From contig NIVC01001384.1 in assembly GCA_002269645.1 (NCBI GenBank), positions 7,801 to 71,800 on the forward strand: a stretch of DNA of 64,000 nucleotides, read 5' to 3'. The stretch's first letter is position 1. Each line of letters opens with the position of its first letter. The position numbers were made by a program, and so were the translations under genes. The stretch is from Macrostomum lignano (Eukaryota). The notes under the pieces were generated by a model. That model saw nothing but the letters and a program-made list of their open reading frames with translations. It was not told the DNA's origin and made no database searches. Below, one piece after another: positions 1,261-39,315 of this stretch.

Positions 1261-3840
1261 TAGCTCAACTCTTTGACTTTGGTTTTATGAATATATTTTA
1301 TTTTTGATATACATATTTATATATAGCTAAGAATAATAAAAAAGACTCATTAAACCAATGAGCCAAACTATGCAATTTTAATGATTTTTTATAAGCATAG
1401 GTAAGCCCTATGCAGTTGTATATAAAATAAAAAACTAATTAACATTAGAATCCTACTTTTCTTGATAAAAAGCTTTATAAATATCACTATAAAGCTATTG
1501 CAAAGGCACAACATATCCAAAGATTCTGATAAGATTAGCTTTCTATTGAAAGCAATAACAAGTTTATTAATAAAAGAAAGTAAAAAAGTTCTTATCTTCA
1601 TAGAGACAGTGTTTTTTTAAATAAAAAGTGGCATTCAAAACTTTTTCCATAAAATGTAAGTATTGCATTCTATATATATGTTGCAGTTTAATTGTCTTTA
1701 GGGCCTATATGTATAGTATACATTATTTTTAATTTTGGTATTGTTGGCATACTCATTTTGGCACTGCAGAGGCTGTTTTATTGCCTTAAATCAAAATTAT
1801 TTATTATCATAATTTATGGTTTACTAGGTAATATTAATGAGGCCTAAATGATAAAGACAAAGCATTTGCACATCCCTAGGCCCATAGTTTTTATTGGGAA
1901 TAATGTCTCCCCCAATGATATAAAAAAACCAATAAATGAAAAAAATTGGAAATATAACACTATACATTAAAGCAAAAAAATAGAAACTGCTTATCCCAGT
2001 GCATTTTAATAGAATTAAAAATACTAATAATTTTGTTTGGTCATTTTCAAATATAAACATATGAGTAATATTAAAAAAATGGAAATTTTGATAGAATGAA
2101 GAAGGAGGAACTTGAAGGAAAAGTTTATAGCCTAATTTATACTCGTAAAGCTAGTGGAACCTAGCTAGTGGAAAGTAGCAAAAGTTCTTTTGATTGAATG
2201 CTTTCAGACTTCTTTGTTAGGCTGATGTGACAAAAAGATATCTATGGAGAAACTTGGAGAAGCATATAGCTTTTAAAGCAATAGAATATTTCAAACTTTA
2301 TTGCTTTTTGTTCCCTCCTTTTGCTACGCTAAAAGTCTTGGATATGCATTCAAGTGTTGCTCAAAGGAGTGTGAGAAACACCCTTTGGGGATAGGGCACA
2401 GTTGAGCTGAGATTCATGCTCAACTTTCATTGGCTCATGGGTTTATTGTAGTCATTTACTGCAATCATTTTGTAGCATTCATTGTAGCCAGTTAGCCATT
2501 TGTGAGCTATCACTTTGAAATTTTGTTAACTTGTTGACTTAATGTAAGTCTATGGGTGACCTTTTGCTACATATGTAGTTGTAACTTTTGATAAAAACTG
2601 ATGGACCCAAATGATTCTAGTAGCAAATTGTAGAAGTTAAAAGCCGCTTTCCAGCAACACCTAACTTGTAATTATTGATTGCATTGTTCATGAGCAGCAT
2701 GTTGATATATATTGCAAGAATACACTGTGCTAATGCATTGTGTACAAGTAGTACAATTATTTTAAAAGTGATTACACTGATAAACTTTTGTTGAGCTTTA
2801 AATAGGTGTCTTAAAATGTCTATAGCTTGAATACCATATCCCTTGACTACTTACTATAGGTATTTTATAAGTTTCCTTGTTCTAACAACTAAAATATTTT
2901 TTACATAAGTTAAAAGTAACATATATACTAGGAGGGTCAAGGAACATTGATTAGACTAAAGGATCAGTCACCTAAAACACTTTATATGATTCATATTAGA
3001 ATAGCAACCCTTTTGATTTGTTTAAGGTTATTTATTCTTGCTATCTTGAGTATACTGAACTGAATACTTTAGAGACAATGTTTATAAAATGTCAGAAGCC
3101 TAAATTTTAACTATTAGTTAGCTACATGTATACAAGATGTTGCCACTAACTCAACATTTTCTAAGTTGAGTATATATGCCACTATAGCTGTGGCCCATCC
3201 TGGCTTAAGTCAAAATTTGCCTAGCCTATCTTGGGCCCAACATGCTCTAATCTAGCCAAGTCAAGCTTAATTGTCTATGATATGTATATCCTTTTAGAAG
3301 CTAATAAATATTGAATAACTACTCAAATATTAGGTCCCAATATTTAATAATATTTAATATTCCTAATAATTAGGACTTTTTGAACCTTAAAGATATAAAA
3401 AACTTCTAATTTTCTGATTTTTTTAAACTTTGCCAGGCAGTCAAGGGGTATCATAAATGATAAAAAAGCTAAATCTGCAAATGTTTACCCTTGGCTTTGG
3501 TGATGATAGGAGCTTGATTTGTTTATCCCCTATAGATTATAACTGTTAACTATTCTGGTTTGTTATTAAACATAAATGTAAAACAATATATGCTTAATGA
3601 ATTAATAATCTACCTAATCTTAAATAGGTATCAAGTCTCTATTGAACAGAGTTTAGGATAAACAGAACTTCTAGTTTTGATAGGACTACAATTTCTTTTC
3701 TATATGGGTTACTCATGGCATGGGTTATTTAGATATTTAAGCTTCATTTTTAATTGGGTCAAAATTTTATATTACTTGATCTTCAATAGATCCCTATACC
3801 TATATTGAAGTTTAGGTATTGAACACCTTGATTCCCTATG
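1261..3840. other. AT-rich, strongly CpG-depleted island, probably a decayed transposon or foreign DNA
   Basis: By eye only about three CG dinucleotides in ~2.6 kb, while sequence after ~3850 has abundant CG. No intact ORF. Confidence 0.55.
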
Positions 3841-4155: not shown

Positions 4156-5061
4156 ATGAGCAGTCGTGATTCTTACCTAGCCTGGCTATCAAAGCCACTG
4201 ATTGAGCACGCCAACAAGGTGCTAAGCAAAGACTTGAATAAATCGGGCGAGCGTCTATACGATCATTGGTGCCGTCGAACCCGCAAAGAGTGCTTCATGG
4301 CCAGCTATCAGAATGAGTTCTTTCGAGCCTCCTATTGTATTAACCGGCTAGCAATATCCGCCAGGTCTTACATCCAGGCTGCCGATCGGATATGCGCCGA
4401 CGTGCCCGAATTCATGGATTTTCTACGCTCTGTTAGGCACGTTATCAGCATTGGCTGCGGTCCCGGCTCCGATGCCATTGGCCTGTTAGCCTTTCTTGGT
4501 TGCGGCTTGCCGCAGCAGCAGCAGCAAGAAAAAGCCGAACTGCAAGAGCAGCAGCGCATTGTATTCTACATGATTGACCAGTGCGACAGCTGGGCCGACT
4601 ACGTGTCCGCGTTGGACGCGCATCTAGTCAATACTGGCTCCTCGTTGTGGTTCAAACCGCTCCGATTTAAAGATATTGGCCACGAGGCCTATCTGCCGCC
4701 GGCCGATATGATTGTATTTAGCTTTGCCAATACGGCACTGATGGATCCGCAGCTCTGGCCGCAGTTGGTCCGGCGCTACAGACTAGTATTAGTGCTTGAC
4801 AGCGTCCGCGAGACTCTCAAAGACGAATACGACGGTTGCAAGTTTAATTCGTTTCAGCTTAGCGATCGAACTCGGTGCTATTTTCATCTGGCTGGCTATT
4901 CCAGTACTAATAGTAGTAAAAAAGAAAATTTAGATGATTCGCCCGAAGCTGCCAAGGTTGACACCGAGGCGGCGATGCCGCCGCCATCGCCAATGTCTGA
5001 GCCGTCACCGACGCCTACGACGTCTGACGCGCCGGATGTTGCTTCTATAGCCAACGATTGA
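4156..5061 (+). CDS. Class I SAM-dependent methyltransferase-like protein, intronless, 301 aa
   Basis: Non-repetitive ATG-TGA ORF with motif I VISIGCGPGSD, an acidic residue after beta-2 (FYMIDQCDSW) and a motif-IV-like ADMIVFSF; Pro/Ser/Asp-rich C-terminal tail; GC-rich relative to its flanks. Confidence 0.75.
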   Translation: MSSRDSYLAWLSKPLIEHANKVLSKDLNKSGERLYDHWCRRTRKECFMASYQNEFFRASYCINRLAISARSYIQAADRICADVPEFMDFLRSVRHVISIGCGPGSDAIGLLAFLGCGLPQQQQQEKAELQEQQRIVFYMIDQCDSWADYVSALDAHLVNTGSSLWFKPLRFKDIGHEAYLPPADMIVFSFANTALMDPQLWPQLVRRYRLVLVLDSVRETLKDEYDGCKFNSFQLSDRTRCYFHLAGYSSTNSSKKENLDDSPEAAKVDTEAAMPPPSPMSEPSPTPTTSDAPDVASIAND

Positions 5062-5750: not shown

Positions 5751-8438
5751 GCCAGCGCCATGTAATATATGCAATGCTTAAGCACGAAAGCCATGCTATT
5801 CTGCTATGATCCTAGATGTGCATACTTGTCCAAAAGTTTGCATTGATGATCAGCTACTTGTATTCTATTCTGTGCTTTAGATGCCTTCCTCTAAGTCCCG
5901 GTCTCGCGTTAAATGTATTTTCAGTGCAGCCAGGATATAATTACATGCACATTTAATTAGGCATGCACTTATCATCAGTGAGTGCGTGTTTGTTATTTTA
6001 TACGTTTGTTTGTTCGACTCATTCACTTGTCTGAACTTATGTAGCTTTCTCCGTCAGTTTATTTAATGAAATATTGAGCATTCAAATTTGCTTTTATTTC
6101 TACTTCTAGTAGCAGTCTCATGGATAGCGTATTTTAAAATATACGTGTATCTACGTTTGCTTTTTGACGTTTGATCAACATGCGTAAAATCGAAAGCGAA
6201 AAAAATCGACTTCATTCCTTTATTTTTCTTAGGGAAATTTGAAATATAAACTTGTAGCGATTGTAATGCAATACTTTGCATCAAAACAAGATGTTGGCGT
6301 CAAAAGCGCGCCAGATAAGGTCGGTTATATTTATAACTAGAAGCGTGTCGGTTGGCTGGCATTGGGCCGAATTTTTGTTGATGAAGAAAGCAAATCATGT
6401 GAAGCCAGGGCGCACTGGCTCTCAAAGCTCCGTTGCAAATTTTGCAGCAAGGTGCCCAGTTGCATTTAAAATAAGATCAATTTGTTAAAAGTGAGTTCAT
6501 GTAAAGGGGAATATTATAGTTCTTTCCATATTTAAGAAGGCGATGATTATTGATCTTTTGGAAATGCTAAGCTGCTAATTTGATCTCCCGATTCTCCCTC
6601 CTCGCACGAAGCTAGCCGTGCGAAATGAAAAATTTGAGAAGCCAACGATTTTTATGACGATTTGCCTTTCAATCTAATCAAGCCTGTGAAGTAGGGGGGG
6701 GCAATTGAAATCCTAGTGCTCCAGCTTTAAAGTGTTGAGTAGCTGGCATTGTCTAAAGCGGGTGGAAAAGCCAAGCATGAATTGCACCTCTCTAGAACCT
6801 GTATATAGTCGCATGCTGTATCAAATTCCGCACAGAAATTTTCCATTGGAGCTGTTGCTTACATCAATGCTCGGGCACACTCTGTCAATGCTGCTTGAGC
6901 TGTGGTGGTTCTTTGGCTTTTTTAAGCAAATACTTTTTGTCGGGATTTCTGCCGCATGCCTGGCTGTGTGTGCGTCTTAACGAGCTGTTGTCATAGCAGT
7001 TGGCTATCTCAAAGTAAAAATTTAGGAATGCAAATGTTTGCAATTATATTCTTATTGTTTGCATTCCTAAAGCGAAGTAGCATTCCTAAAATGCAACGAG
7101 CTGTATATAATGTATGCAGCAAGTTTGACAAATCGCCAATGTTGTTCGCCTTGCATGCGCGACCACAAAGCCAATGGGATTTAATCGATGCCTGGAATTA
7201 AAACTCTTTGCATGGGTGGTCTTATTGCTAAATTTTTAATTCCCTCTTTCTCTTCGCTTCATTCTCCCGCCGCTCTGAGCACTTGTTTTAGCACACAGAT
7301 TTTAGCTCGTATTCATTAGAGCGGCTTGATCTGCCCCAATCCCGCTGCAGAGCTCTTCCCAAGGGAGCAAAAATATGAGCGAGACCCGTGCTGGGACTTA
7401 CAAGATCCCATCTGGTTGGGAATGGGAAGCAGCAGGTCTTATAGGTATATGGCTTGTATTGCTTTTATTTTGAATTATTGCCCTAAGTGTTTTATACAAT
7501 ACCACAACAGTCTGGTCTTTCCCGATCTGCGAATGGATATTAGATGTAAGTACAACAGCTTGTGGTCTATTGGATAGATTTCTCCTCGCAAAATCTGAAC
7601 CAAATCTTCGGTTCCCTGTCCCAGCGAGTTGGGCTTTTTTATCTACCCGCGAGCCACTCGAAGCCTTTGAATTTTGTTTGAAACGCTTTCCCCTGCAAAA
7701 ATTGCTCTTGCCTATTCATTTACCTAATTGAAATGCGCAGTGCCGGCTGCGTATGACGGCTGACTGAAATGGTTACAGAGTTCTCTGTAGCAAATCAGAA
7801 TGCCATTATTGAAGGATTGAATTTAGCTTAGCTTGACTAAACTACATTTAATAACTGTGTCTCCAACGTTTCCTTAGAACGGCAATAGCATGACGCATGG
7901 CCCGGAATCCATGTAGCTGTATGCAAATAAATCGGTAGTTTGCAAATTTGAGTAGTTCGTGTCGGTTGAGTAATTTATGCTGCAATATTACTTCGCTATC
8001 GCATCTCTATAGTCATTCGCACGTTTTTTTATCTGCAAATGATTAACTACAGCTTTGTATCCGCTATAGGCGCTTTATTACCTTGGCGCCCGAGGGAGAT
8101 GGATACGAAAGTCAAAGGAGAGGCGGCCAGCTCGCATTCCGATATATTTTGTATTACTCGATGCGCCTTGCCTTCTTATGCGTCAGAAGCTGTAGCTATC
8201 GTGGAAAAAAGTTACCTATTTCTTTATCCTATGTGAGGAAACATTAAAGCGCACATCCCGGTACAAGCCGCTGGGTCTCACAAAGATTTGCAATTTCATC
8301 ACTCGCATGCAGTGGAGCGCTCTTTCAATAGGACGCCTCGATTCCTTCCCGATAGACGTCACACTGCACGGCCTTGTTGGCTAAGGCCTCCCCGGATTGG
8401 TGCACGAAAGAGCTAGTGAACGGACGATCATCCGCTAT

Positions 8439-8446
8439 TATATAAG
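8439..8446 (+). promoter_or_regulatory. Candidate TATA box of the LFGxxDRY neuropeptide gene
   Basis: TATATAAG about 80 nt upstream of ATG 8527. Confidence 0.4.
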
Positions 8447-8526
8447 CGTCGTCCGCTACAGGAAATCTTACCGATCTTACCAAGTCTTGGCAAATCTAAC
8501 CAGCCTAGTCCTCTCCAGTTTTGCCG

Positions 8527-9081
8527 ATGCGCAGCAAAGTTGTCTCACTGGGCCAGGCCGGGCGCCTCCTGGTCGCGCTGCTTTTGGCTATGACAGTCTT
8601 TGCTTCACTTTCCGACGGGCAGCCTCTGCGCGGCGAGGATGGCTTCGCCGAGACGGACAACGGTGCCGTCAGTGACTGGTCTGTCAGCCGGTCTCTGTTC
8701 GGAAGTCCGGACAGGTACAAGCGTCTGTTCGGCACTACTGACAGGTACAAGCGTCTGTTCGGCACTCCTGACAGGTACAAGCGTCTGTTCGGCACTCCTG
8801 GCAGGTACAAGCGTCTGTTCGGCACTCCTGACAGGTACAAGCGTCTGTTCGGCACTCCTGACAGGTACAAGCGTCTGTTCGGCACTCCTGACAGGTACAA
8901 GCGTCTGTTCGGCACTCCTGACAGGTACAAGCGTCTGTTCGGCACTCCGCTGGACCGATTTCGACGACGCGACGCCAAGCGACTGTTCGGTTTCGAGCAG
9001 GCAAATCGGTTTCGACGGTTCTACCGGACGGGCTCGTACTTTGACGCTAGGCCTGACCGGTTCAAGCGTTTTGACGAGTGA
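8527..9081 (+). CDS. Neuropeptide precursor (prepropeptide) with ~11 LFG..DRY/F-type peptides
   Basis: Hydrophobic signal peptide (MRSKVVSLGQAGRLLVALLLAMTVFASLSDG), acidic spacer, then SLFGSPDRY, LFGTTDRY, LFGTPDRY x5, LFGTPGRY, LFGTPLDRF, LFGFEQANRF and FYRTGSYFDARPDRF, each followed by KR/RR convertase sites. Eight near-identical 30-bp coding units lie at ~8693-8948. Confidence 0.92.
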   Translation: MRSKVVSLGQAGRLLVALLLAMTVFASLSDGQPLRGEDGFAETDNGAVSDWSVSRSLFGSPDRYKRLFGTTDRYKRLFGTPDRYKRLFGTPGRYKRLFGTPDRYKRLFGTPDRYKRLFGTPDRYKRLFGTPDRYKRLFGTPLDRFRRRDAKRLFGFEQANRFRRFYRTGSYFDARPDRFKRFDE

Positions 9082-10146
9082 CTCGATATCCGTTCCGTCC
9101 CGTCCGCGTCCTGCACGTGCGAACTGATTTGTTAAACACGTTATCTATTGCATGTGCTATATAGACGACGCATATTACAAAATAAGAACTCTGAACAATT
9201 GTGAACTGAACAATTTAGTCTGCTATATCGCAGTTTATTCCTCGTCTCCTTGGTTGTTCGAAGAGTAGGCCCAGCTTCCTGACTCCCTTAGGGGAGCTTT
9301 GGAAAGTTCCCTATCAATACATACTACTGAGAAGCTAACCACTATGGACTGCCTAAGGAACTCAATGTCTTGTTCCTGCATAATCAGATGCACACTCAGA
9401 GATTGCCGGTAACTCGTCTGCGCACAGGACCATATCAAGGGAAATAGTCAAAAGAATCCTGTTCAATTAAACTCTGCTTCTCAGTCTGCAGGCTCTGCAA
9501 GGTGTAGTACATGTACAAGCTATACCCATGGTCGAGTACGTGTGATTAAAAATTAAAATAGCATAAGTCTGGAACCCCTATCTGTCGTATCCAAAAGCTT
9601 GATGCAAATTGGCATTGATTCTTCTGTCAGCAGCTAAACTGAAAGCTAGCCTATAGAAGCTATATACTCTGTCATACCGAGAGATGGGTTACTGCATTGT
9701 GCTGGCAATCATCGAAAATCCATGCCAGTGCGCGCCCGAGAAAAATGCTGAGCTGCTTGGTTGGAGGTGAGAGTAAAATAATTATTTTTCTGAAGCTGTG
9801 AAGGCATCCTGAATTCATTAGCCATATGGCTTTCCTTTTTTGAATAGAATGTTATTCCCTACTCAGAATCTGCAACACAGAGCCTGCCATCTAGGACGAG
9901 AATAGCTTTGCGAGTAAATTACAATGAAAGTGAACTGCTTGCCATTATGCATAGCTAATGCGTTTTCTAAATTGTATTTTCCACGGCTCACGTATAACAA
10001 GCAGTCTGCGATTCCCTGGATACTGATAGATTATATAGAGATTGCTTATGGAGACCGATAGCCTATATCAATATACACACGATCACAGCAGGTGTAATAA
10101 ATATTGTTAGGTTTTTTTTCTTTCAAAAAACAGGCTATCTGTTAAC

Positions 10147-10462
10147 TGAAGCATCGGTGAGGGAATAGGAGCCGCTCAATGAAGCATCGGTGAGGAGGGT
10201 AGGAGCCGCTCAATGAAGCATCGGTGAGGGAATAGGAGCCGCTCACTGAAGCATCGGTGAGGGAATAGGAGCCGCTCACTGAAGCATCGGTGAGGGAATA
10301 GGAGCCGCTCACTGAAGCATCGGTGAGGAGGGTAGGAGCCGCTCAATGAAGCATCGGTGAGGGAATAGGAGCCGCTCACTGAAGCATCGGTGAGGGAATA
10401 GGAGCCGCTCACTGAAGCATCGGTGAGGGAATAGGAGCCGCTCACTGAAGCATCGGTGAGGG
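10147..10462. repeat. 33-bp minisatellite (GAAGCATCGGTGAGGGAATAGGAGCCGCTCACT)
   Basis: About 9-10 tandem copies. Confidence 0.92.
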
Positions 10463-10929: not shown

Positions 10930-11775
10930 TTCACCTCTGTTTGTGTCCAGCTACCCCAGTTTGTGTCTAGCTACCTCTGTTTGTGTCCAGCTACACCAGT
11001 TTGTGTCTAGCTACCTCAGTTTGTGTCTAGCTACCCCAGTTTATGTCCAGCTACCCCAGTTTGTGTCTAGCTACCTCAGTTTGTGTCCAGCTACCCCAGT
11101 TTGTGTCTAGCTACCTCCGTTTGTGTCTAGCTACCTCAGTTTGTGTCTAGCTACCTCCGTTTGTGTCTAGCTAACTCAGTTTGTGTCCAGCTACCCCAGT
11201 TTGTGTCTAGCTACCTTAGTTTGTGTCTTAACTATCCCAGCTTGTGTCTAGCTACCTCAGTTTGTGTCTAGCTGCCTCAGTTTGTGTCTAGCTGCCTCAG
11301 TTTGTGTCTAGCTACCTCAGTTTGTGTCCAGCTACCCCAGTTTGTGTCTAGCTACCTTAGTTTGTGTCTTAACTATCCCAGCTTGTGTCTAGCTACCTCA
11401 GTTTGTGTCTAGCTACCTCAGTTTGTGTCTAGCTGCCTCAGTTTGTGTCTAGATACCTCAGATTGTGTCTTAACTATCCCAGCTTGTGTCTAGCTACCTC
11501 AGTTTGTGTCTAACTATCCCAGCTTGTGTCTAGCTACCTCAGTTTGTGTCTAGCTACCTCAGTTTGTGTCCAGCTACCTCAGTTTGTGTCTAGCTACCTC
11601 AGTTTGTGTCTTAACTATCCCAGCTTGTGTCTAGCTACCTCAGTTTGTGTCTAGCTGCCTCAGTTTGTGTCTAGATACCTCAGATTGTGTCTTAACTATC
11701 CCAGCTTGTGTCTAGCTACCTCAGTTTGTGTCTAGCTACCTCAGTTTGTGTCCAGCTACCCCAGTTTGTGTCTAG
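10930..11775. repeat. 20-bp minisatellite (CCAGTTTGTGTCTAGCTACC), array 1
   Basis: Tandem copies with variant units. Confidence 0.92.
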
Positions 11776-12409
11776 CCAATTCTATCTCTTATTAAATTTA
11801 TTTTCCTGGTGATAAATATCTGCTAAAAAAGTTAGTTCGCAATGCTGGCGACAGATTTGCACTTGTAAAATATGCAGATATTTTTGTAGCAGCAGTATTC
11901 ACAAATGACTCATCGGGCAGAAAGAAGCAGGTGATCAGGCAAAATTGTTTTAATGATTATGGTAGCAGAAAAATAGAATGAATAGAATAGAATACATACT
12001 ATACAGCAACACACTAAATTCACATGTATAGGTAATATATGAATACTGAAAGTTTGCTGAGTGGCATAAGTGCATACTGACAATATCTAGAAAGTCTATA
12101 AATATATCTAAAATCTTATTTGTTTTAATTAATGAGATCTGAAGGGCAAACGCAATAATAAATTAATGGCTTTGGTGAAAACTTAACTGTTTATGTTGCT
12201 TTGAATTCAGGATTAAATCGGGCGAGAAATATTTTGAAAATTAATAATTCACGAATAATTATTAATAGTATACAAAAATTATTAATAGTAAACAATGAAT
12301 TCTAGAATTTTGTGAGAAAATTATGCTCAAATTGGTTGTGCATTTATCGTTATAAAGTGCAGTATTGGCTATATTACATGTATCTGTACTAACTATGCCA
12401 CTATCGTGT

Positions 12410-13200
12410 CTACTAGCTACCCCAGTTTGTGTCTAGCTACCCCAGTTTGTGTCTAGCTACCTCAGTTTGTGTCTAGCTACCCCAGTTTGTGTCTAGCTAC
12501 CCCAGTTTGTGTCTAGCTACCTCAGTTTGTGTCTACCTACGTCAGCTTGTGTCTAGATACCTCAGATTGTGTCTAGCTACCCCAGTTTGTGTCTAGCTAC
12601 CCCAGTTTGTGTCTGGCTACCTCAGTTTGTGTCTACCTACGTCAGCTTGTGTCTAGATACCTCAGATTGTGTCTAGCTACCTCAGTTTGTGTCTACCTAC
12701 GTCAGCTTGTGTCTAGATACCTCAGATTGCGTCTAGCTACCTCAGTTTGTGTCTACCTACGTCAGCTTGTGTCTAGATACCTCAGATTGCGTCTAGCTAC
12801 CTCAGTTTGTGTCTAGCTACCCCAGTTTGTGTCTAGCTACCTCAGTTTGTGTCCAGCTACCCCAGTTTGTGTCTAGCTACCTCAGTTTGTGTCTAGCTAC
12901 CCCAGTTTGTGTCTAGCTACCCCAGTTTGTGTCTAGCTACCCCAGTTTGTGTCTAGCTACCCCAGTTTGTGTCTAGCTACCTCAGTTTGTGTCTAGCTAC
13001 CCCAGTTTGTGTCTAGCTACCCCAGTTTGTGTCTAGCTACCTCAGTTTGTGTCTACCTACGTCAGCTTGTGTCTAGATACCTCAGATTGTGTCTAGCTAC
13101 CTCAGTTTGTGTCTACCTACCCCAGTTTGTGTCTAGCTACCTCAGTTTGTGTCTAGCTACCCCAGTTTGTGTCCAGCTACCTCAGTTTGTGTCTAGCTAA
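12410..13200. repeat. 20-bp minisatellite (CCAGTTTGTGTCTAGCTACC), array 2
   Basis: Same unit as 10930-11775; ends 6 nt from the Kirre-like stop codon. Confidence 0.92.
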
Positions 13201-16200: not shown

Positions 16201-19200
16201 GCTCTAACCACTGGGCTTACAACCCCCTTAAGCCCTGAATCAGCCCTGAAAGCAAGCTATCTAGCTAGCTAGATATCATCTATCTATTTCTCAAGCAATC
16301 GGGTGTACAGCAGCCCTGACTGTCTAATCGTCAGGCATGTGCACTCTTTGTGCCTTGTGGGTTGGCCCTCATGGCTGTGAATCACACGACAGCCTTTCAA
16401 CCAAATTTCCTGCACAAGCCTCAAATGCATGGTTTGCACACGGAATCGAGCCAACAGGGCCACACTACTACAAGTAGCTGGCTGCGGTTCTACTCACTCC
16501 TCTTGTCCAGCTTCTTCAGGCGCTTCATCGCCCGTTGCTGCCACAGTCTGCTGGCAGGACGGACTGCCGGCCCCTGACGGGTCAGGAATCTCGCCACGGC
16601 GACGCCCCGGTGCCCGGGACTCAGGTCCGTCAGCTCGAGCCCCGACGGGCCCCAGGAGGTCGTCATTGACGACGAAATTGGCGCGTTTCGCTGCTGCTGC
16701 TGATGTCGCCGAAGGAGGCTGCCGTGGACTGCGCAGGTGCTCGCCGGGATGAAGGACGATGTCTCGTTTGCAAACGGGTAGCTGTCGACGAGCAGCGGCT
16801 GCCCGGCTGTACATGTCTGGCTGGCTTCCGCGTCATCCGCCGCGTCCTCGCCAGGCTGCAGCAGCCGCTTGGACGGCGACTCGACTGCTGGGCCTCCCGG
16901 CTGGGCGCCGGCGACAACGCAGCCATTTCTCTTGCGGGCTTGAAGTGCATCGAGTAGTTTGTTTAATGCAATTTAGTTAGTAAACTAATACTTTTTAACA
17001 TTACATAAATTTAAATCCAAATCCCCATGACATAATCCACGCATCCCAGTGTCATAATCCTTATCCTAGAGTCTTTATCTGACACCTCCCGGTGTCTCAA
17101 TTCACATTACAGTGCCTTAATCCACATATTCCAGTGTCTCAGTCTACATTCCAGTGTCCCAGTTCACACCCCAGTGTCACAGTTCACACCCCAGTGTCCC
17201 AGTTCACATCCCAGAGTCCCAGTTCACACCCCAGTGTCACAGTTCACACCCCAGTGTCCCAGTTCACACCCCAGTGTCACAGTTCACACCCCAGTGTCCC
17301 AGTTCACACCCCAGTGTCACAGTTCACACCCCAGTGTCACAGTTCACACCCAGTGTCCCAGTTCACACCCCAGTGTCCCAGTTCACACCCCAGAGTCCCA
17401 GTTCACACCCCAGTGTCCCAGTTCACACCCCAGTGTCCCAGTTCACACCCCAGTGTCCCAGTTCACACCCCCAGTGTCCCAGTTCACATCCCAGTTTTCC
17501 TGTCCCCATCCCAATGTCTCATTTCACAGCCCAGTTTTCCAGTTCCCATCCCAATGTCTCATTTCACATTCTAGTGTTTTAGTTTAGATCCCAGTATCCC
17601 AGTTCCCATCCCTATGTCTCAGTTCACACCCAGTGTCCCAGTTCCCGGCCAATGTCCCAGTTCACACCCCAATGTCCCAGTTCACATCCCTGTGTTTCAG
17701 CTCAGATTCTAAAGTCTCACTTCACATCGGAATGTCTAAGTTTACATCCTAATGTCAGTTCACATGCCAATGTCTCAGTTCCCACTCCAGTGTCCCAGTC
17801 CAGAATCCAGTCGAAATGCAACTCAATAAACCAGGATGTCACAGTTCGCTTACCTTTAGTCGAGTCGTTAGCAGATTCCCATCTACTTCGCCGACAAACG
17901 CAGACCAGGACAAGCACGAAGATGAGCACCATTAGCAGCGCGATAGAGGCGCCAGCTATGAAAGCCGTGGGAATGTTCTCTGCCAAGGTTGAGGTGGGGT
18001 TGCTCAGGTTGTGTTGGGTAAGTTGGGAAAGTTAGCGTAGATGTGATAAGGCAATTGAGGCAGTTCTGCCCAGTCCGCTGAGTCCTGAGCACATTCAAGC
18101 GCACCAATACTGTACTCAGGCACAGCACTCATGCACACGCTCACACAGGGTGCACTGCGGTCCTGACTTTCGAATCGTCAGGCATGTACACTCTGTGCCT
18201 TGGGGGCTGGCCCTCATGTCTGTGAATCGCACAACAAACCATCAACCAATTTTCGTGCACAAACCCCAAATGAATCGGTAGATTAGGTGTGAGATCAGGT
18301 GGGAGATCAGGTGTGAGATCAGGTGTGAGATCAGGTGGGAGATCAGGTGGGAGATCAGGTGTGAGATCAGGTGTGAGATCAGGTGTGAGATCAGGTGGGA
18401 GATCAGGTGGGAGATCAGGTGGGAGATCAGGTGGGAGATCAGGTGTGAGATCAGGTGGGAGATCAGGTGTGAGATCAGGTGGGAGATCAGGTGGGAGATC
18501 AGGTAGGAGATCAGGTGGGAGATCAGGTGGGAGATCAGGTGGGAGATCAGGTGGGAGATCAGGTGGGAGATCAGGTGGGAGATCAGGTAGGAGATCAGGT
18601 GTGAGATCAGGTGTGAGATCAGGTGTGAGATCAGGTGTGAGATCAGGTGGGAGATCAGGTGTGAGATCAGGTGTGAGATCAGGTGTGAGATCAGGTGGGA
18701 GATCAGGTGTGAGATCAGGTGTGAGATCAGGTGTGAGATCAGGTGTGAGATCAGGTGAGAGATCAGGTGTGAGATCAGGTGGGAGATCAGGTGGGAGATC
18801 AGGTGTGAGATCAGGTGTGAGATCAGGTGGGAGATCAGGTAGGAGATCAGGTGTGAGATCAGGTGTGAGATCAGGTGTGAGATCAGGTGTGAGATAGAGT
18901 TCGAGACAGGCCATGTAAAGTCCATATCGCATTTTCGCAAAGTCACGGATAAGCCGCTGACCTTCCACGTGCAGCAGAATCACGCCCGAGTGGGTGCCCA
19001 GCCCATTGTCCGCGGTGCAGTTGTACTCCCCGGAGTCCGAAGGCTGCACTTCGTCGAAGTGCAGAAAGGCCGACGTGCCGCCTACGAAGTCTTCGCGGTA
19101 GAGGCGACGCCTGTCGGATATTTTAATTGTCATCCAGCTTCTAATACACCTATTCACCAACTCCAGATACCATTCCCCAGCACCAGGCAGTATTCACCAA

Positions 19201-22200
19201 CTCCAGATAGCGTTCACCAACTCCAGATAGCGTTCACCAACTCCAAATAGCATTCACCAGCACCAGGCAGTATTCACCAACTCCAGATAGCGTTCACCAA
19301 CTCCAGATAGCGTTCACCAACTCCAGATAGCATTCAACAACTCCAGATAGCATTCACAAACCGAGATAGCATTCACCAACTCCAGATAGCATTCACCAAC
19401 TCCAGATAGCATTCATCAACTCCAGATAGCATTCACCAACTCCAGATAGCATTCACCAACTCCAGATAGCATTCATCAACTCCAGATAGCATTCACCAAC
19501 TCCAGATAGCATTCACCAACTCCAGATAGCATTCACCAACTCCAGATAGCATTCACCAACTCCAGATAGCATTCATCAACTCCAGATAGCATTCACCAAC
19601 TCCAGATAGCATTCATCAACTCCAGATAGCATTCACCAACTCCAGATAGCATTCATCAACTCCAGATAGCATTCATCAACTCCAGATAGCATTCACCAAC
19701 TCCAGATAGCATTCACCAACTCCAGATAGCATTCACCAACTCCAGATAGCATTCACCAACTCCAGATAGCATTCACCAACTCCAGATAGCATTCATCAAC
19801 TCCAGATAGCATTCACCAACTCCAGATAGCATTCATCAACTCCAGATAGCATTCACCAACTCCAGATAGCATTCATCAACTCCAGATAGCATTCACCAAC
19901 TCCAGATAGCATTCACCAACTCCAGATAGCATTCACCAACTCCAGATACCATTCACCAACTCCAAATAGCATTCACCAACTCCAGGCAGCTTTCTGATCG
20001 CACCTGAGCCCGGGCTCCACCGCGGTGCCGTCGCCGCGGCTCCATCGGACGCCGTCGGGCTCGATCGGCAGCGGCACGGAATTGACGCGGCACTCCAACC
20101 GTACCGATCGCTGGCCAGCCACAACTACGTAGCGCTGACGATCGACGTTGACGCCGCTTCCATCAGACGACGTCGCGGACGCAGCCACCGCCGTCGGGAC
20201 GCCGGCCGACACAACCCGAGGCGGCGCCGCCCTAGCCAGGATGACTCGACGCGTCACTGTGGGGAAGCCGGTCGCGCTGGCTGAGCAGGTGTACTCGCCG
20301 AAGTCCGCCTCGCCAACCGGGTCCAGACGGAGCGTCGCCGATCGGCCAAGGACATCGCCGTCACCTCTGTCGACGCGGCGCCATTCAACAGAGGCCGTCG
20401 GGCTGGACTCGACGCGGCAGTCGAGGCTGGCGATGCCTCCCGGCGAAGCCGCGTACAGCCGGGGCAAGTTGAGCGCGAACTTCGGACCGTAGTGGACGCG
20501 CAGGCGGACTTCAGCCTCGCCGCGGGCGAAGCTGGTTGCCGAGCAGCGGACGGTCCGACCGTCATGCCGACGGGTGAGAAGCATTGGGAGGCGCGGCCCG
20601 AACTGCTGGATGATCGGCTCCAGATTGTCTATGGTCCAACTGAAAGGGGGAGAGAAATTTATATAAATCATGACTACAGTCTACAGACTACAGTCTATGG
20701 TCGAAACCCCGGGGTTTCGCGCTGCGGCTAGGCGCCTGGAGTGGCCCATCTGGGGTTTTGAGAATATGTCTGGGGCTGAAGCTACTTCTTGCATTGAATT
20801 TGCGCCAGCGGTCAGCAATGTCTCAACTTCTGAACTTCCGAATTCCAACTGAAGCCAGCATGTGTTTCGTCCGAGGTATTTTTTCGACAACAGGGGGTTG
20901 TAGCCTAGTGGTTAGAGCGTCGGAATCACGGCTTGAAGGTCGGGGTTCCATTCTTGACCCAACTCGGAACAATTTGTGTCTTTGAGCAAGACACTTAACT
21001 CTACATTGCTTCAGTTCACCAAAGCTGTAAAATGGGTGCTAGCATTAGCTGGGGTAATCGAGGGTGTGTGTGGTGACCCCCCAGTCCTTGGACTGAACAG
21101 CCGTACGCAGCCTTCAGATGCGCCGCGCAATAGCTGCGGCTGAGCTGTCGGTTGCACATCTGCCCAGATGAAAACAATTCATCAATTGTTTTTTAGACAT
21201 CAAAATCTGAAAGTCCTACTGTTAGTAGCCAGTTTAGCAAAAAAAACGTCCCGGAATTAATTTTTATTCATTCGTTCCAAAGCAGGGACAAAGCAGGTTT
21301 TAGTTGTCCCTGTTCCAAAGCCTTACCTGTAGGTAAAGTTATCTGGCCGGCCGAAAGCCTGGCACACCGCGATGACATTGTCGTGCTCCCTGTACTGGTT
21401 TCCAGGCCGCAGGGGCTCCAGGACCACGCGAACCCGCGGAGGCACGCTGACGTAGAGGCGAGTCCCGGCCGTCAGAGCCGGCTCCGACTCGAACCCGGGC
21501 ACATGGGCGCTACACTCGATTGGCATGTTGTGGTGCGCGTCCGTCACCGACTGGCTGGAGATTGACAGCTCCGATCGAGCGCTCAGCCTTGGTGAAAGGC
21601 GGAATATTGAATGTCATCTGTGATCTTGTCACTAGCTAGATTGATCTAGTAACTAGCTAGATTGATCTAGTCACTAGCTAGAATAATCTAGTCACTAGCT
21701 AGATTGATCTAGTCACTAGATTGATTGATCTATACACTAGCTAGATTGATCTATTAGCTGGACAACGATCTTCCGTCGGTCTTTCATCGAAGGGAATCAA
21801 CTGTATAACTGAAGACTCACAGCTGGCCCTCTTCAGCCAGGGCGGTCATTACTGCGAAGCCGTTCAACGGTGTCTGGAAGCTGGCCGGCAGCTGCGGTCG
21901 CTGGAACAGCGGCACCGGGATTCTAGTTTCGTCGCGCAGCGTCCAAGACATCGCTGGCGCCGGACTGGCCGGGCCGGCCACGCAAGCCAGTCGGAGTGGC
22001 TGTCCGGCCAAAACTCGCACGGTCGAGTTGGCAGGCTTGTCTGTACTGTCCGGGCCGGTGACGCGGTACAGCCGCAGCCAGGCCGAGTTGTGCAGCACCC
22101 GCAGGTAGCCGGGGTCGGAGATCAGCGGCCAGCTCTGGGCGCGCGATTGCAAGGCCAGCTGGCAGGCGTACTCGCCCTGATCCTGCAGTCGGACCCCAGC

Positions 22201-26660: not shown

Positions 26661-28692
26661 GTCTTGTTTCATCCAGCCGGGTTCAAGACCGAACACAAGC
26701 CAGCTGCAGAGCAAAAGAATTAATTCCGTGAAGTGGTCTAGCAAACATTGTTGCGCAGGGAGTAGGGAGGGGGTCGAGCGATCGACTTTCCCTCATCTCT
26801 CTCGTGTCCCTATATCTTCATCCTAGATGATGGCGGTGGTGGGGTGAGGGCAGTTTACAAGTCTCAGTTGTTGGACAAGCGCACTGGCCCCTATATAGGA
26901 TCAACAGGTTATTATACACAGGTTCCCTGCCAGCCCGCCCGCCAGTACCAGTCAGGCCCCAAATATGGCGCACTGGTGCTTCAATGCAATACGAGCGCTA
27001 TAGGCCGTTTCCTCGCCACTTTCTTATATTTATCTTTTTTCTCCTCTGATTAATTGGCTATAGCAGCACAGCACAGGGTGCCAGGGGCAGTAAAGAGGCG
27101 AGTGGGAGAGTGAGGGTGAGGATAAAGCAGATGGGGAAGTGCAAGAGGCCGCAATAAGTTATGGCGTAGCAATAAAAGGCGGTGCTGGGTGCCAAGGATA
27201 ATCTTGGCTAGAAAAGGGAGGCTGTAACAGTTGGCTTGCGGCCAACGATTACTAAAATGCTAGTTCTTAATAGCGGCTGGCGAAGCGTTCAGCAGCAGCA
27301 GGCTGATTATTTACGAGGAGAAGGAGAATTAAAGGTAGAGAAAAGGTGAGATTTTAGAAGTTAAGCTTATGTTTCAGAGAATTTTCCGATAATTTCGTAT
27401 AAAAATAACAATGGGAAAGTCATGGCCCTGTGTGAGTGCGCGCCTGCCCGTGTGTACACAGACACGCATAGTTCACATTGGGGTTGTACATCTGCCCTGA
27501 CTCCTCCCCCGTAGATTCCGTACGCAAACCACCGCCCCGCCACGCCCCCTTCCCCAAAATACGGGTATGACGGCCACGCCTTGGCCCGCGAAATCTGGGG
27601 TGGTGGGGTGGCCTGAGTGTACAGTGTGCCACTAGGATTGAGATACCAATCGATAAGCCAACCAATCAGAAACGAGAAGAGGGGAGGGAGAGAGAACCAT
27701 AGAGAGGAGGGAGAATGACTTAAAGTGCAATGACACAGAAGGACGAAAGCTGCGACAAGAAAAGAAAAATCACCGATAGAGAGAGAAGTGCTCCAGGAAA
27801 ATCATATCGGAAATCGGACACAAGCGCTTCTTAAATGGGGATTAAAGGGGATCCAAGGATGGACAGACAGCCGTTAGAAGTAAACAGATTTAGAGAAAGG
27901 GAAGAGGGAGTGAGAGATGGCCAGCAAATGCAAGAGAAGAAGATAAATGAAAACTCCCGCCACTGATGAAGGTTGGCGCTGGATAGCTGGGCCACAAAGC
28001 TCGGAGATAGTCTGCACTACTTTCTTCTTAGAGGCCTGCTCTACTCCCAGAGGCGGAAGGCCACTGCAAAATTAATATCCCAAAGTGCGCTGCGGGCTAA
28101 TCTCTTCTATTTGTTATGCTACTACTTTCGCTACGCCTACCGGCACCCAGCGGCCTCCCAAACTTCCAAGCCCGGGGGAGCCTTCCATCATTCTTTGCCA
28201 TCCTCCATTCATTCACTTCCCGTCTTTCCCGATCCCCCTGTCCTCTAACTTTTCCCTCCTTTCTCTCGCTGATCAGTTTCTTCTAATACTGCGGCTTTTG
28301 TAAGTTTCCATTCCTTTCCGTCAAGTCATTATTATGGTAACTTCATTCTTTCCTTTGCCAACCCTCTGGCACCATTTTTCATTCACTGCCACACTCCCGG
28401 CTGCGAACTAGCTGCTGCCTTCGGAAAAAAGCGCGTTGAAGCCCGTGTAACACGCGATCGCTTCTTGAGCAGCTGGCTGCTTGCAATGTCAGTCCGTTAA
28501 ACTTGTTCCTTGACATCTCTCATCTTTAGCAGTAAGAATATTAAGCCATCTTTCTCGAACGGGTCATCAGTTACTATCCTGACACCGTCGGCTGCTTGAG
28601 AGACTTGAGAGAGTTGAAGATCAGATTTCCTGGGACGCATGACTAAGCGCGCATGACATTAGCGTGCATTTTGAAACTGCTCTACGTGACAC

Positions 28693-28995
28693 AAGCGCGC
28701 ATTTCAAATGCAGACGTCTGGAACAAGCGCGCATTTCAAATGCAGACGTCTGGAACAAGCGCGCATTTCAAATGCAGACGTCTGGAACAAGCAAGCGCGC
28801 ATTTCAAATGCAGACGTCTGGAACAAGCGCGCATTTCAAATGCAGACGTCTGGAACAAGCGCGCATTTCAAATGCAGACGTCTGGAACAAGCGCGCATTT
28901 CAAATGCAGACGTCTGGAACAAGCGCGCATTTCAAATGCATGACTCTGGTGCAAGAGCGCAGTTAAAATGTACGTGTCTGGCACAAGCGCGCATC
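28693..28995. repeat. 32-bp tandem repeat built from palindromes (AAGCGCGCATTTCAAATGCAGACGTCTGGAAC)
   Basis: About 7-8 copies; the unit contains GCGCGC, GCATTT-C-AAATGC and CAGACGTCTG. Confidence 0.9.
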
Positions 28996-31420: not shown

Positions 31421-32357
31421 NNNNNNNNNNNNNNNNNNNNNNNNNNNNNNNNNNNNNNNNNNNNNNNNNNNNNNNNNNNNNNNNNNNNNNNNNNNNNNNN
31501 NNNNNNNNNNNNNNNNNNNNNNNNNNNNNNNNNNNNNNNNNNNNNNNNNNNNNNNNNNNNNNNNNNNNNNNNNNNNNNNNNNNNNNNNNNNNNNNNNNNN
31601 NNNNNNNNNNNNNNNNNNNNNNNNNNNNNNNNNNNNNNNNNNNNNNNNNNNNNNNNNNNNNNNNNNNNNNNNNNNNNNNNNNNNNNNNNNNNNNNNNNNN
31701 NNNNNNNNNNNNNNNNNNNNNNNNNNNNNNNNNNNNNNNNNNNNNNNNNNNNNNNNNNNNNNNNNNNNNNNNNNNNNNNNNNNNNNNNNNNNNNNNNNNN
31801 NNNNNNNNNNNNNNNNNNNNNNNNNNNNNNNNNNNNNNNNNNNNNNNNNNNNNNNNNNNNNNNNNNNNNNNNNNNNNNNNNNNNNNNNNNNNNNNNNNNN
31901 NNNNNNNNNNNNNNNNNNNNNNNNNNNNNNNNNNNNNNNNNNNNNNNNNNNNNNNNNNNNNNNNNNNNNNNNNNNNNNNNNNNNNNNNNNNNNNNNNNNN
32001 NNNNNNNNNNNNNNNNNNNNNNNNNNNNNNNNNNNNNNNNNNNNNNNNNNNNNNNNNNNNNNNNNNNNNNNNNNNNNNNNNNNNNNNNNNNNNNNNNNNN
32101 NNNNNNNNNNNNNNNNNNNNNNNNNNNNNNNNNNNNNNNNNNNNNNNNNNNNNNNNNNNNNNNNNNNNNNNNNNNNNNNNNNNNNNNNNNNNNNNNNNNN
32201 NNNNNNNNNNNNNNNNNNNNNNNNNNNNNNNNNNNNNNNNNNNNNNNNNNNNNNNNNNNNNNNNNNNNNNNNNNNNNNNNNNNNNNNNNNNNNNNNNNNN
32301 NNNNNNNNNNNNNNNNNNNNNNNNNNNNNNNNNNNNNNNNNNNNNNNNNNNNNNNNN
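31421..32357. other. Assembly gap (N run)
   Basis: Run of N. Confidence 1.
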
Positions 32358-34329: not shown

Positions 34330-36905
34330 ATCACCTTTGTTCTCTTAGTCTCACCTCTGCTCCCTATCATTTCTTCTACTCGCATCACAAATTTACTCTC
34401 TGTCTCCTTTTTGTATCACCTTTGTTCTCCGGATCTCTTCTGTTGTCTCACATTTACTCTCCGTCTCTTCTGTTGTCTCACCTTTACTCTCCGTCTCTTC
34501 TGTTGTCTCACCTTTACTCTCCGTCTCTTCTGTTGTCTCACATTTACTCTCCGTCTCTTCTGTTGTCTCACCTTTACTCTCCGTCTCTTCTGTTGTCTCA
34601 CCTTTACTCTCCGTCTCTTCTGTTGTCTCAGCTTTACTCTCCGTCTCTTCTGTTGTCTCACATTAACACTCTCCGGATCTCTTCTGTTGTCTCACCTTTA
34701 CTCTCCGTCTCTTCTGTTGTCTCACCTTTACTCTCCGTCTCTTCTGTTGTCTCACATTTACTCTCCGTCTCTTCTGTTGTCTCACCTTTACTCTCCGTCT
34801 CTTCTGTTGTCTCACATTTACTCTCCGTCTCTTCTGTTGTCTCACCTTTACTCTCCGTCTCTTCTGTTGTCTCACCTTTACTCTCCGTCTCTTCTGTTGT
34901 CTCACCTTTACACTCTCCGGATCTCTTCTGTTGTCTCACCTTTACTCTCCGTCTCTTCTGTTGTCTCACCTTTACTCTCCGTCTCTTCTGTTGTCTCACA
35001 TTTACTCTCCGTCTCTTCTGTTGTCTCACCTTTACTCTCCGTCTCTTCTGTTGTCTCACCTTTACTCTCCGTCTCTTCTGTTGTCTCACCTTTACTCTCC
35101 GTCTCTTCTGTTGTCTCACCTTTACTCTCCGTCTCTTCTGTTGTCTCACCTTTACTCTCCGTCTCTTCTGTTGTCTCACCTTTACACTCTCCGGATCTCT
35201 TCTGTTGTCTCACCTTTACTCTCCGTCTCTTCTGTTGTCTCACCTTTACACTCTCCGGATCTCTTCTGTTGTCTCACCTTTACTCTCCGTCTCTTCTGTT
35301 GTCTCACCTTTACTCTCCGTCTCTTCTGTTGTCTCACATTTACTCTCCGTCTCTTCTGTTGTCTCACCTTTACTCTCCGTCTCTTCTGTTGTCTCACCTT
35401 TACTCTCCGGATCTCTTCTGTTGTCTCATCTTTACTCTCTCTGGATCTTCTGTTGTCTCACCTTTACTCTCCGGATCTCTTCTGTTGTCTCATCTTTACT
35501 CTCCGTCTTTTCTGTTGTCTCACATTTACTCTCCGTCTCTTCTGTTGTCTCACCTTTACTCTCCGTCTCTTCTGTTGTCTCACCTTTACTCTCCGTCTCT
35601 TCTGTTGTCTCACCTTTACTCTCCGTCTCTTCTGTTGTCTCACCTTTACTCTCCGTCTCTTCTGTTGTCTCACCTTTACTCTCCGTCTCTTCTGTTGTCT
35701 CACATTTACTCTCCGTCTCTTCTGTTGTCTCACCTTTACTCTCCGGATCTCTTCTGTTGTCTCACCTTTACTCTCCGTCTCTTCTGTTGTCTCACATTTA
35801 CTCTCCGTCTCTTCTGTTGTCTCACCTTTACTCTCCGTCTCTTCTGTTGTCTCACCTTTACTCTCCGTCTCTTCTGTTGTCTCACCTTTACTCTCCGTCT
35901 CTTCTGTTGTCTCACCTTTACTCTCCGTCTCTTCTGTTGTCTCACCTTTACTCTCCGTCTCTTCTGTTGTCTCACCTTTACACTCTCCGGATCTCTTCTG
36001 TTGTCTCACCTTTACTCTCCGTCTCTTCTGTTGTCTCACCTTTACACTCTCCGGATCTCTTCTGTTGTCTCACCTTTACTCTCCGTCTCTTCTGTTGTCT
36101 CACCTTTACTCTCCGTCTCTTCTGTTGTCTCACATTTACTCTCCGTCTCTTCTGTTGTCTCACCTTTACTCTCCGTCTCTTCTGTTGTCTCACCTTTACT
36201 CTCCGGATCTCTTCTGTTGTCTCATCTTTACTCTCTCTGGATCTTCTGTTGTCTCACCTTTACTCTCCGGATCTCTTCTGTTGTCTCATCTTTACTCTCC
36301 GTCTCTTCTGTTGTCTCACCTTTACTCTCCGTCTCTTCTGTTGTCTCACATTTACTCTCCGTCTCTTCTGTTGTCTCACCTTTACTCTCCGTCTCTTCTG
36401 TTGTCTCACATTTACTCTCCGTCTCTTCTGTTGTCTCACCTTTACTCTCCGTCTCTTCTGTTGTCTCACCTTTACTCTCCGGATCTCTTCTGTTGTCTCA
36501 TCTTTACTCTCTGGATCTTCTGTTGTCTCACCTTTACTCTCCGGATCTCTTCTGTTGTCTCATCTTTACTCTCTGGATCTTCTCGTTGTCTCATGGACTC
36601 TCTGGATCTCTTCTGTTGTCTCACCTTTACTCTCCGTCTCTTCTGTTGTCTCACCTTTACTCTCCGGATCTCTTCTGTGGTCTCACCTTTACTCTCCGGA
36701 TCTCTTGTCTCACCTTTACTCTCCGTCTCTTCTGTTGTCTCACCTTTACTCTCCGTCTCTTCTGTTGTCTCATCTTTACTCTCTGGATCTTCTCGTTGTC
36801 TCATGGACTCTCTGGATCTCTTCTGTGGTCTCACCTTTACTCTCCGGATCTCTTGTCTCACCTTTACTCTCCGTCTCTTCTGTTGTCTCACCTTTACTCT
36901 CCATC
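34330..36905. repeat. ~2.5-kb 30-bp minisatellite (TCTCACCTTTACTCTCCGTCTCTTCTGTTG)
   Basis: Tandem copies with recurring variant units; generates the 899/864/664-aa ORFs. Confidence 0.96.
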
Positions 36906-38949: not shown

Positions 38950-39315
38950 AGCAGGAAAAGAAAAAGTTTTGACAACTCCCTAGGGGACCGGGATCTCATC
39001 TGCACCATGAGACTTGTGCTCTAAAAAAATTGAAAAACTGTTAGATAAATTCAGCTTCAGATCATGTTTTGTACTCAGTAGGTGTCTCAGTATGTCTGCA
39101 GCTTGAAGTCTCATGTCCCTCGACCACTTACTGCAGGTGTTGTTTACAAGTTTCAGTGCCCTGAGGATCAGAAAATCTCTTGCATAGGGAAAACGAAGCG
39201 ACAACTGTACACTAGGATCAAGGAGTATTGGACTAAAAGATCAGCCTTCCAAGAACACCTGCTCACGTGTGACTCATGTTGTAGCAGCAAACCTCTCGAC
39301 TTGTTTAAGATCAGT
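38950..39315 (+). mobile_element. Degenerate Penelope-like element fragment (GIY-YIG endonuclease)
   Basis: LKSHVPRPLTAGVVYKFQCP...SCIGKTKRQLYTRIKEY...SAFQEHLLTC matches the PLE GIY-YIG pattern (VVYkf.C...YIG.T.R.L..R..EH). Catalytic motifs are altered and the fragment is cut off by a minisatellite. Confidence 0.8.

Follow-up and report, generated by a model that had tools for sequence, protein, structure and literature searches.

An undescribed candidate precursor of non-amidated Arg-Tyr and Arg-Phe peptides in Macrostomum lignano

When an open reading frame (ORF) is made up largely of a tandem repeat, in a genome where tandem repeats abound, how is a precursor of signalling peptides to be told from an accident of minisatellite growth? 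The question is raised by positions 8527-9081 on the plus strand of a stretch of Macrostomum lignano DNA (the window, meaning all 64,000 nucleotides analysed; it is NIVC01001384.1:7801-71800 of the Mlig_3_7 assembly and identical to it in sequence), where a sequence-only reading had placed the precursor of a lineage-specific or undescribed neuropeptide family. The same 555 bp are covered by the call for GenBank gene BOX15_Mlig015463g1, whose model is derived from transcripts and whose label is "hypothetical protein". The gene is real and intact, exists in three copies and has no detectable relative, and its best description is a lineage-restricted multi-copy peptide (MCP) precursor, an undescribed example of a very common kind. 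That it encodes signalling peptides, probably neuronal or neurosecretory, is what the features of its translation suggest, with a probability of about 0.6.

How is the frame laid out? The elements, from 5' to 3', are these.

8439-8446, plus strand: TATATAAG, a TATA-like box that precedes the ATG by 81 nt, a putative promoter element
8527-9081, plus strand: complete single-exon coding sequence of 184 amino acids and a stop codon, from reading of the ORF
8527-8613, plus strand: predicted signal peptide, residues 1-26 or 1-29, composed of MRSKVVSLGQAGR, LLVALLLAMTVFA and SLS, from hydropathy and the -3/-1 rule
8614-8691, plus strand: acidic N-terminal spacer DGQPLRGEDGFAETDNGAVSDWSVSR, from the translation, its last residue a single Arg
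8694-8948, plus strand: 30-bp tandem array of 8.5 units with 96% matches, from Tandem Repeats Finder
8935-8961, plus strand: diverged copy LFGTPLDRF, followed by RRR-DA-KR, from the unit listing
8983-9012, plus strand: diverged copy LFGFEQANRF, followed by RR, from the unit listing; LFGFKQANRF in the other two genomic copies
9019-9063, plus strand: FYRTGSYFDARPDRF, with KR after it, of all the peptides the longest and the one that has diverged most; YFDARPDRF, its tail, can be aligned to the unit LFG-TPDRY
9070-9081, plus strand: C-terminal tripeptide FDE and the stop codon, from the translation

The frame is uninterrupted through 184 codons, from the ATG at 8527 to the stop codon at 9079-9081. 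In-frame stops stand 8 and 11 codons 5' of that ATG, which is consequently the first possible one, and no other ATG occurs between the TATA element and 8527. At the N-terminus a basic n-region (R2, K4, R13) leads into a hydrophobic core, LLVALLLAMTVFA, where the Kyte-Doolittle mean peaks at 3.19 over 9 residues; the n, h and c regions fit a signal peptide, and small residues at -3/-1 permit the predicted cleavage after either A26 or S29.

What would be cut from the remainder? Splitting at KR/RR gives, in order, SLFGSPDRY, LFGTTDRY, five identical LFGTPDRY, LFGTPGRY (all of these encoded by the array, with KR after each), LFGTPLDRF, the spacer (R)DA, LFGFEQANRF, FYRTGSYFDARPDRF and the tail FDE. 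Eleven peptides thus end in RY or RF, just as the sequence-only reading had it, and its coordinates and its count of five LFGTPDRY were likewise correct when the ORF was read again. It had also noted that the Gly needed as amidation donor is missing, and so it is from 11/11 peptides: KR or RR follows each directly, and Gly before a dibasic site occurs in 0 cases. Its further statement that the peptides are bounded by KR/RR is confirmed as well; ahead of the first peptide stands the single Arg that ends the spacer. With no basic residue at P4, P6 or P8, that Arg is at best a conjectural cleavage site, and a spacer ending in this way means that the first peptide may keep an N-terminal extension. 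There is no Cys among the 184 residues, the peptides are short and near-neutral (pI ~5.8), neither amphipathic nor cationic, and the ORF stops 4 codons past its last dibasic site.

The repeat on its own does not exceed chance and is weak evidence. More telling are the three diverged units 3' of the perfect array, which remain in frame, beginning with Leu-Phe-Gly and ending in Arg-aromatic-basic-Arg (LFG...R[FY][KR]R), while the codons vary across units: GGA, GGC or GGT for Gly, AGG, CGA or CGG for the P4 Arg, and CGT, CGA or CGG for the P1 Arg. The proportion of synonymous differences (pS) exceeds that of non-synonymous ones (pN) in 5/5 unit comparisons (0.78 vs 0.12 for the core against unit 9, and 0.29 vs 0.04 for the core against unit 1), these values coming from short alignments in which units 10 and 11 were placed by eye on amino-acid similarity. 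Mainly synonymous change between units is the signature to be expected if selection acts on the peptide that this frame encodes. Two comparisons within the window bear on the rest of the layout. A hydrophobic N-terminus this strong is found in only 6 of 126 ATG-initiated ORFs of at least 50 amino acids, and the signal-like part here lies outside the array; and among the 12 arrays whose period is divisible by 3, this is the only one with a single dibasic site in every unit. It is the combination that goes beyond chance: a signal-like N-terminus, an array with one dibasic site per unit, diverged copies, an excess of synonymous change and a transcript-based gene model.

Is this the only such gene? 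No second copy or paralogue is detected by tblastn inside the 64-kb window. The protein matches two M. lignano 'hypothetical proteins', with a third in the same 90% cluster, and the assembly holds two more near-identical copies of the gene, one on NIVC01000169.1 and one on NIVC01000153.1, both with an unbroken reading frame of 174 residues. The three copies lie at 8527-9081 in the window, at 6001-6525 in the locus here called L002 and at 3001-3525 in that called L003, with 8, 7 and 7 array units respectively. Between them the differences are whole 30-bp units and single substitutions only, and no frameshift occurs in 3/3 copies. The flanks are, indels aside, 98.5-99.7% identical and the coding sequence 99.4%; flank identity this high fits the large duplicated fraction of the Mlig_3_7 assembly (PMC5730564). 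The TATA element is kept upstream of all three, as are the signal-like N-terminus and the first-ATG arrangement. In the 5' untranslated region, L002 (5881-6000) and L003 (2881-3000) carry an insertion of ~22 bp, GATAAATTTTGCTTCGATAAATC-like, relative to window positions 8407-8526, and a single substitution has made an upstream ATG (CCGATGTT) in the L002 copy. No canonical AATAAA poly(A) signal was found within 300 nt downstream of the ORF.

Databases under-report these proteins. The annotated products are of 144, 124 and 144 amino acids (window, L002 and L003), compared with 184, 174 and 174 for the genomic ORFs, and since the products are short though the gene calls span the full ORFs, the annotation must skip DNA inside the array. 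What it omits is 120, 150 and 90 bp, in each case an exact multiple of one 10-residue unit (3-5 units); the product of the window gene is without four of the repeat units of its ORF. As a practical correction, then, PAA68587.1 and PAA89328.1 (144 amino acids each) and PAA88951.1 (124), in both GenBank and UniProt, give 3-5 copies fewer than the genomic DNA encodes. How could such a deficit arise? AG|GT and CAG| are both present in each 30-bp unit, which leaves a spliced aligner free in every case to open a GT-AG gap n x 30 nt long, and the low copy number of the entries may be due either to repeat collapse in transcript assembly or to real in-frame splicing. The M. lignano annotation was built only from RNA-seq and de novo transcripts mapped with BLAT (PMC5730564), and gene models from a transcript-only annotation mean that RNA from these loci exists.

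If the precursor is what it appears to be, its maturation can be sketched. The signal peptide would route the protein to the secretory pathway, where a subtilisin-like proprotein convertase, of PC2 or furin type, would cut after each R-[YF]-[KR]-R, and an enzyme of carboxypeptidase E/D type would then trim K and R. With no Gly as donor there would be no amidation and the products would be free-acid peptides, for this allele five LFGTPDRY-OH together with LFGTTDRY, LFGTPGRY, (S)LFGSPDRY, LFGTPLDRF, LFGFEQANRF and FYRTGSYFDARPDRF. Once released they would most likely act as extracellular signals on a receptor, with neurons or neurosecretory cells the most probable source. Every step past the ORF itself, from entry into the secretory pathway to the action as a signal, is our inference, as is the type of cell. 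The enzymology has precedents in the phylum: the M. lignano PC2 homologue is expressed in a pattern suggestive of the nervous system, and hatchlings die when it is knocked down (PMC4490696), and free-acid, KR-flanked Schmidtea peptides ending in Y, F or L have been seen by mass spectrometry (MS), namely QFDPIMY, NYMDFFGLNGDMQRF and the PPP peptides (PMC2953531).

Need the source be neuronal? The alternative that survives best accepts the precursor as read and makes its peptides exocrine or paracrine, products of gland, epidermis or reproductive tract with a pheromone, seminal-fluid or defensive role, cut by furin in the constitutive pathway. In its favour, Arg occupies P4 in 11/12 dibasic cleavage sites, so that R-[YF]-[KR]-R matches the minimal furin-type consensus R-x-K/R-R, and sites of furin type make processing possible in any secretory cell, not in PC2-expressing neurons alone. 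In this they are unlike the MS-verified planarian prohormones examined, whose P4 is non-basic, e.g., L or M (PMC2953531 supplement). The conserved Arg of the RY/RF ends may owe its persistence as much to cleavage as to recognition by a receptor. Amidation, the commonest hallmark of neuropeptides, is missing; the closest non-animal architecture is that of yeast alpha-factor, which is a secreted pheromone; and a copy number of 8 vs 7 vs 7 is of a kind often met in dosage-driven secreted products. However, peptides that are short, near-neutral and neither amphipathic nor cationic do not look antimicrobial, and neuronal non-amidated multi-copy peptides are well documented in flatworms and xenacoelomorphs. 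Exocrine release from this precursor we consider unlikely, and the signalling precursor of probably neuronal or neurosecretory origin is preferred.

A more radical doubt is whether there is any functional product at all. Besides the shortness of the unit alignments, several points weigh against a selected signalling peptide. The window alone has more than 30 tandem arrays, and simple and tandem repeats make up ~15% of the M. lignano genome (PMC5730564), a content so extreme that prohormone-like ORFs can appear by chance. The array, when translated from its minus strand, likewise gives 8-mers set off by RR (LYLSGVPN-RR), and an unrelated minisatellite in another genome encodes LFSSPVRY-RK. The identical peptides are near-identical in DNA too, which speaks for recent duplication and not for long conservation. 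Between the genomic copies there are 1-2 differences per pair, and the four that have been characterised (A/V, E/K, P/T and D/G) are all non-synonymous; purifying selection between the three paralogues has left no sign, the flanks being as similar as the coding sequence; and database searches found no orthologue in another species.

Put together, could these points mean that a minisatellite grew in or beside a short ORF with a hydrophobic start, was transcribed without function and acquired its KR spacing as a by-product? Such an origin draws on the extreme density of arrays, on the failure to find orthologues and on the non-synonymous paralogue differences, and also on the fact that, counting both strands, several frames run through the array without a stop, the minus strand being dibasic-bounded as well. 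Of these other frames, the minus-strand ORF 8505-8978 with the LYLSGVPN-RR units was rejected as being without a hydrophobic N-terminus, and plus-strand frame 3 across the array as having no basic sites. Elsewhere in the window, ORF 28653-28943 (plus strand), over a 32-bp array, combines a hydrophobic N-terminus with 5 dibasic sites; its period is not a multiple of 3, its 'peptides' are out of register, and it serves as an example of a false positive. That this ORF too passes a loose prohormone-like filter adds to the case for a functionless frame. What such an origin does not account for is that three diverged units stay in frame and still run from LFG to R-aromatic-basic-R despite multiple nucleotide changes, most of them synonymous, that the stop comes 4 codons past the last site, that frameshifts are in no copy, and that signal-like N-terminus, TATA box and first-ATG arrangement are common to all three. 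A functionless ORF is accordingly an improbable explanation, and the precursor of signalling peptides retains its place.

What would follow? M. lignano is a model for regeneration and sexual selection in which transgenesis and RNA interference are available, and if the signalling reading is true, LFGTPDRY-OH would be an abundant and easily synthesised orphan ligand for receptor deorphanisation and for assays of behaviour or regeneration. A further gain would be a family of non-amidated peptides, of the sort that motif searches for the G-K/R-R amidation site would likely miss. A bolder version, which we regard as doubtful, makes this a young, Macrostomum-restricted signalling gene whose array was built by minisatellite expansion, whose copy number is still changing (8, 7, 7), and whose products are a new class of free-acid R-Y/R-F octapeptides in which Arg is furin-type P4 and pharmacophore at once. 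Were it true, the locus would be a tractable case of how new peptide hormones arise. The perspective is limited, however, by the dozens of lineage-specific multi-copy precursors that turn up in each flatworm or xenacoelomorph survey; one more is useful rather than surprising.

The surroundings of the gene show what else such DNA can contain. The arrays of the window include those at 10145-10462, 10933-13199, 19152-19985, 34392-36902, 39314-40416 and 54680-55324. The one at 34392-36902, 82 units of 30 bp, has two open plus-strand frames with ORFs of up to 899 codons and no family match, and from array-spanning ORFs of this kind it follows that long ORFs in the M. lignano genome are often repeat artefacts. 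At 4156-5061 (plus strand), 3.5 kb upstream, is an annotated single-exon gene for 301 amino acids (304 in the copy near L002) without a Pfam match; the VISIGCGPGSD in its product resembles S-adenosylmethionine-binding motif I of class I methyltransferases, and its tail is a low-complexity run of Pro, Ser and Thr. On the minus strand, ORF fragments at 18141-20671 match Ig_3 and I-set (E down to 7.6e-13) and probably belong, as exons, to a gene of the Ig superfamily that 12-bp and 20-bp arrays break up, and an ORF at 59460-60776 combines a transmembrane-like segment with a cadherin cytoplasmic Y-type LIR-motif domain (PF01049, E 2.7e-15), probably as the final exon of a gene for a classical cadherin that continues, on its 5' side, past the end of the window. 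An assembly gap of 937 N occupies 31421-32357, and ORFs that cross it are artefacts.

Does anything like the precursor exist elsewhere? Against 1.84 billion representative proteins HMMER gave 43 matches, all to the repeat region; the 15 matches inspected comprise the M. lignano paralogue (P0002) and unrelated repeat proteins, so that among them the search for an already described precursor family, proposed by the sequence-only reading, brought up only the animal's own second copy. One match, P0004 (five copies of LFSSPVRY-RK/RR), reaches 51% identity with the M. lignano repeat region in HMMER and was set aside as a chance match. It comes from an AT-rich 30-bp minisatellite on a 1-kb contig (GCA_024449465.1, JAANSR012270685.1; L004, 620-812), from a gene call that reads through TGA, has no signal peptide and shows no DNA similarity to the M. 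lignano array. Another, the protein P0011 from a fungus (Xylariaceae), repeats PFGKPDDFK without a dibasic site between one repeat and the next, and was also rejected, as were Pfam hits to UbiD_N and Phage_Bbp19 (0 accepted stretches), which are artefacts of repeat and composition. Neither word-index nor HMMER searches found a neodermatan or planarian homologue.

The literature is equally silent where it was searched. Peptide strings and gene identifiers occur nowhere in the 8.3 million full texts covered, a scope outside which the catalogues of McVeigh 2009 and Koziol 2016 lie; with no neodermatan or planarian homologue found, the parasite-based catalogue of Koziol is unlikely to hold the peptide. 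The peptide strings are absent too from schistosome neuropeptide papers and from the polyclad larva supplement, and none of the strings RYKR, RFKR and LFG occurs in 51 Schmidtea prohormones (Collins et al., PMC2953531 supplement). Within that scope 'undescribed' is an apt term, and no relatives were found; 'family', the other part of the original claim, goes further than one gene in three near-identical copies in one species can show.

How, finally, does the precursor compare with known systems? The sequence-only reading could match it to none of FMRFamide, luqin/RYamide, NPF, orcokinin or the pedal-peptide consensus, and this holds against all the families tested. With the RFamides and RYamides (the FMRFamide-like peptides of flatworms such as YIRFamide, luqin/RYamide and NPF) the likeness is confined to the last two residues, Arg-Phe or Arg-Tyr. 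FMRFamide-like precursors have RF-Gly and then a basic site, where here KR or RR comes directly after every RF or RY. In luqin/RYamide precursors a single amidated RF, RY or RW peptide stands right after the signal peptide and a conserved Cys pair in the C-terminal part; the M. lignano precursor has 11 copies, no Gly and no Cys. NPF/NPY precursors yield one peptide of ~36-40 residues ending in GRPRF/Y-amide, and the peptides here are of 8-15 residues, multi-copy and non-amidated.

Pedal peptides and orcokinins share the generic design, being multi-copy, non-amidated and dibasic-flanked. Their motif is another matter: over 11-20 residues it opens with x[FYL]D[SEPK]I and closes on a hydrophobic or GFGF stretch, neither of which is in LFGTPDRY, just as it lacks the x[YF]D[PKS]I...LL or GFGF of the pedal and orcokinin peptides of 11-15 residues. 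The faint echo of Smed-ppp-1/ppp-2 and of arthropod orcokinin NFDEIDRSGFGFN consists of SYFD and the FDE tail, the latter judged only faintly orcokinin-like from the start, and its statistical support is none.

Closer in layout are the FDPIx[YF] precursors (Schistosoma npp-26, Schmidtea spp-16 and spp-15), which likewise have a signal peptide and many KR-flanked peptides of 7-8 residues, mostly with a free-acid aromatic C-terminus (SYFDPIY, NFDPILF, QFDPIMY, the last MS-detected in planarians). They differ in that P4 is not Arg, that the spp-15 peptides are amidated, and that the M. lignano units are without F-D-P-I. The set compared here covers schistosomatids, a planarian and one metagenomic contig, with 8 members aligned. 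That contig, from a JGI metagenome (P0053, 904 bp), encodes, unannotated, a signal peptide and ten YFDPIMY/YFDPILY copies between KR sites; it is a clear member of the npp-26/spp-16 family, and its environmental source is presumably a free-living flatworm.

Might the M. lignano gene be a strongly diverged relative of this pedal-peptide/orcokinin-FDPI assemblage (Smed-ppp-1/2, Sma/Sja-npp-26, Smed-spp-15/16), its ..SYFDARPDRF and FDE being remnants of xYFDxI? The common design of KR-flanked, non-amidated 7-12-mers with an aromatic or Leu end would allow it; the last M. lignano peptide has SYFD, as have SYFDPILF (npp-26) and SYFDKIGNDLL (ppp-2); FD(AR)P(DR)F can be superimposed on FD-P(IL)F; and word-index and profile searches found no canonical FDPI precursor among the M. 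lignano proteins, whose slot this gene could then fill. Yet membership was rejected, hhalign against the 8-sequence alignment having matched signal peptides only (probability 26%), FDPI is invariant in that alignment, from schistosomatids to planarian, and no M. lignano unit has it, chance alone would be expected to yield one 4-residue match in a catalogue of this size, and SYFD is internal to its peptide, not N-terminal, so that such descent is very improbable.

Smed-spp-12 (NYMDFFGLNGDMQRF, a free-acid QRF peptide) is similar in having an internal FG, an RF end followed by a dibasic site, and no amidation, and its elements come in roughly the order seen towards the C-terminus of the M. lignano protein. 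It is single-copy and non-repetitive, and as a candidate relative it was rejected, the best BLASTP E = 3.2 over 15 residues not being significant.

The same kind of gene is found among the lineage-specific MCPs of xenacoelomorphs, which are restricted to clades or species and in some cases non-amidated (Thiel et al. 2018, PMC6188537): copies of xFVDRF-KR in the acoel Diopisthoporus, and of GGEILIPRVY-KR and GGEILFPVRY-KR in Nemertoderma (PMC6188537). Belonging to another phylum and having other motifs, they are analogues and not relatives, and they are backed by cross-species comparison or MS, whereas the M. lignano peptides are backed by neither. Further afield, yeast alpha-factor and the fungal Kex2 repeat proteins combine a signal peptide with tandem, KR-released, non-amidated peptides, Tyr-terminal in alpha-factor. 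They differ in being fungal, in having roles as pheromones or as ribosomally synthesised and post-translationally modified peptides, and in spacer dipeptides that a dipeptidyl aminopeptidase removes; the analogy is one of mechanism only. With prohormone-type multi-copy precursors in general the M. lignano protein shares its short repeats, bounded by 12 convertase sites that are kept in its diverged copies through synonymous codon changes.

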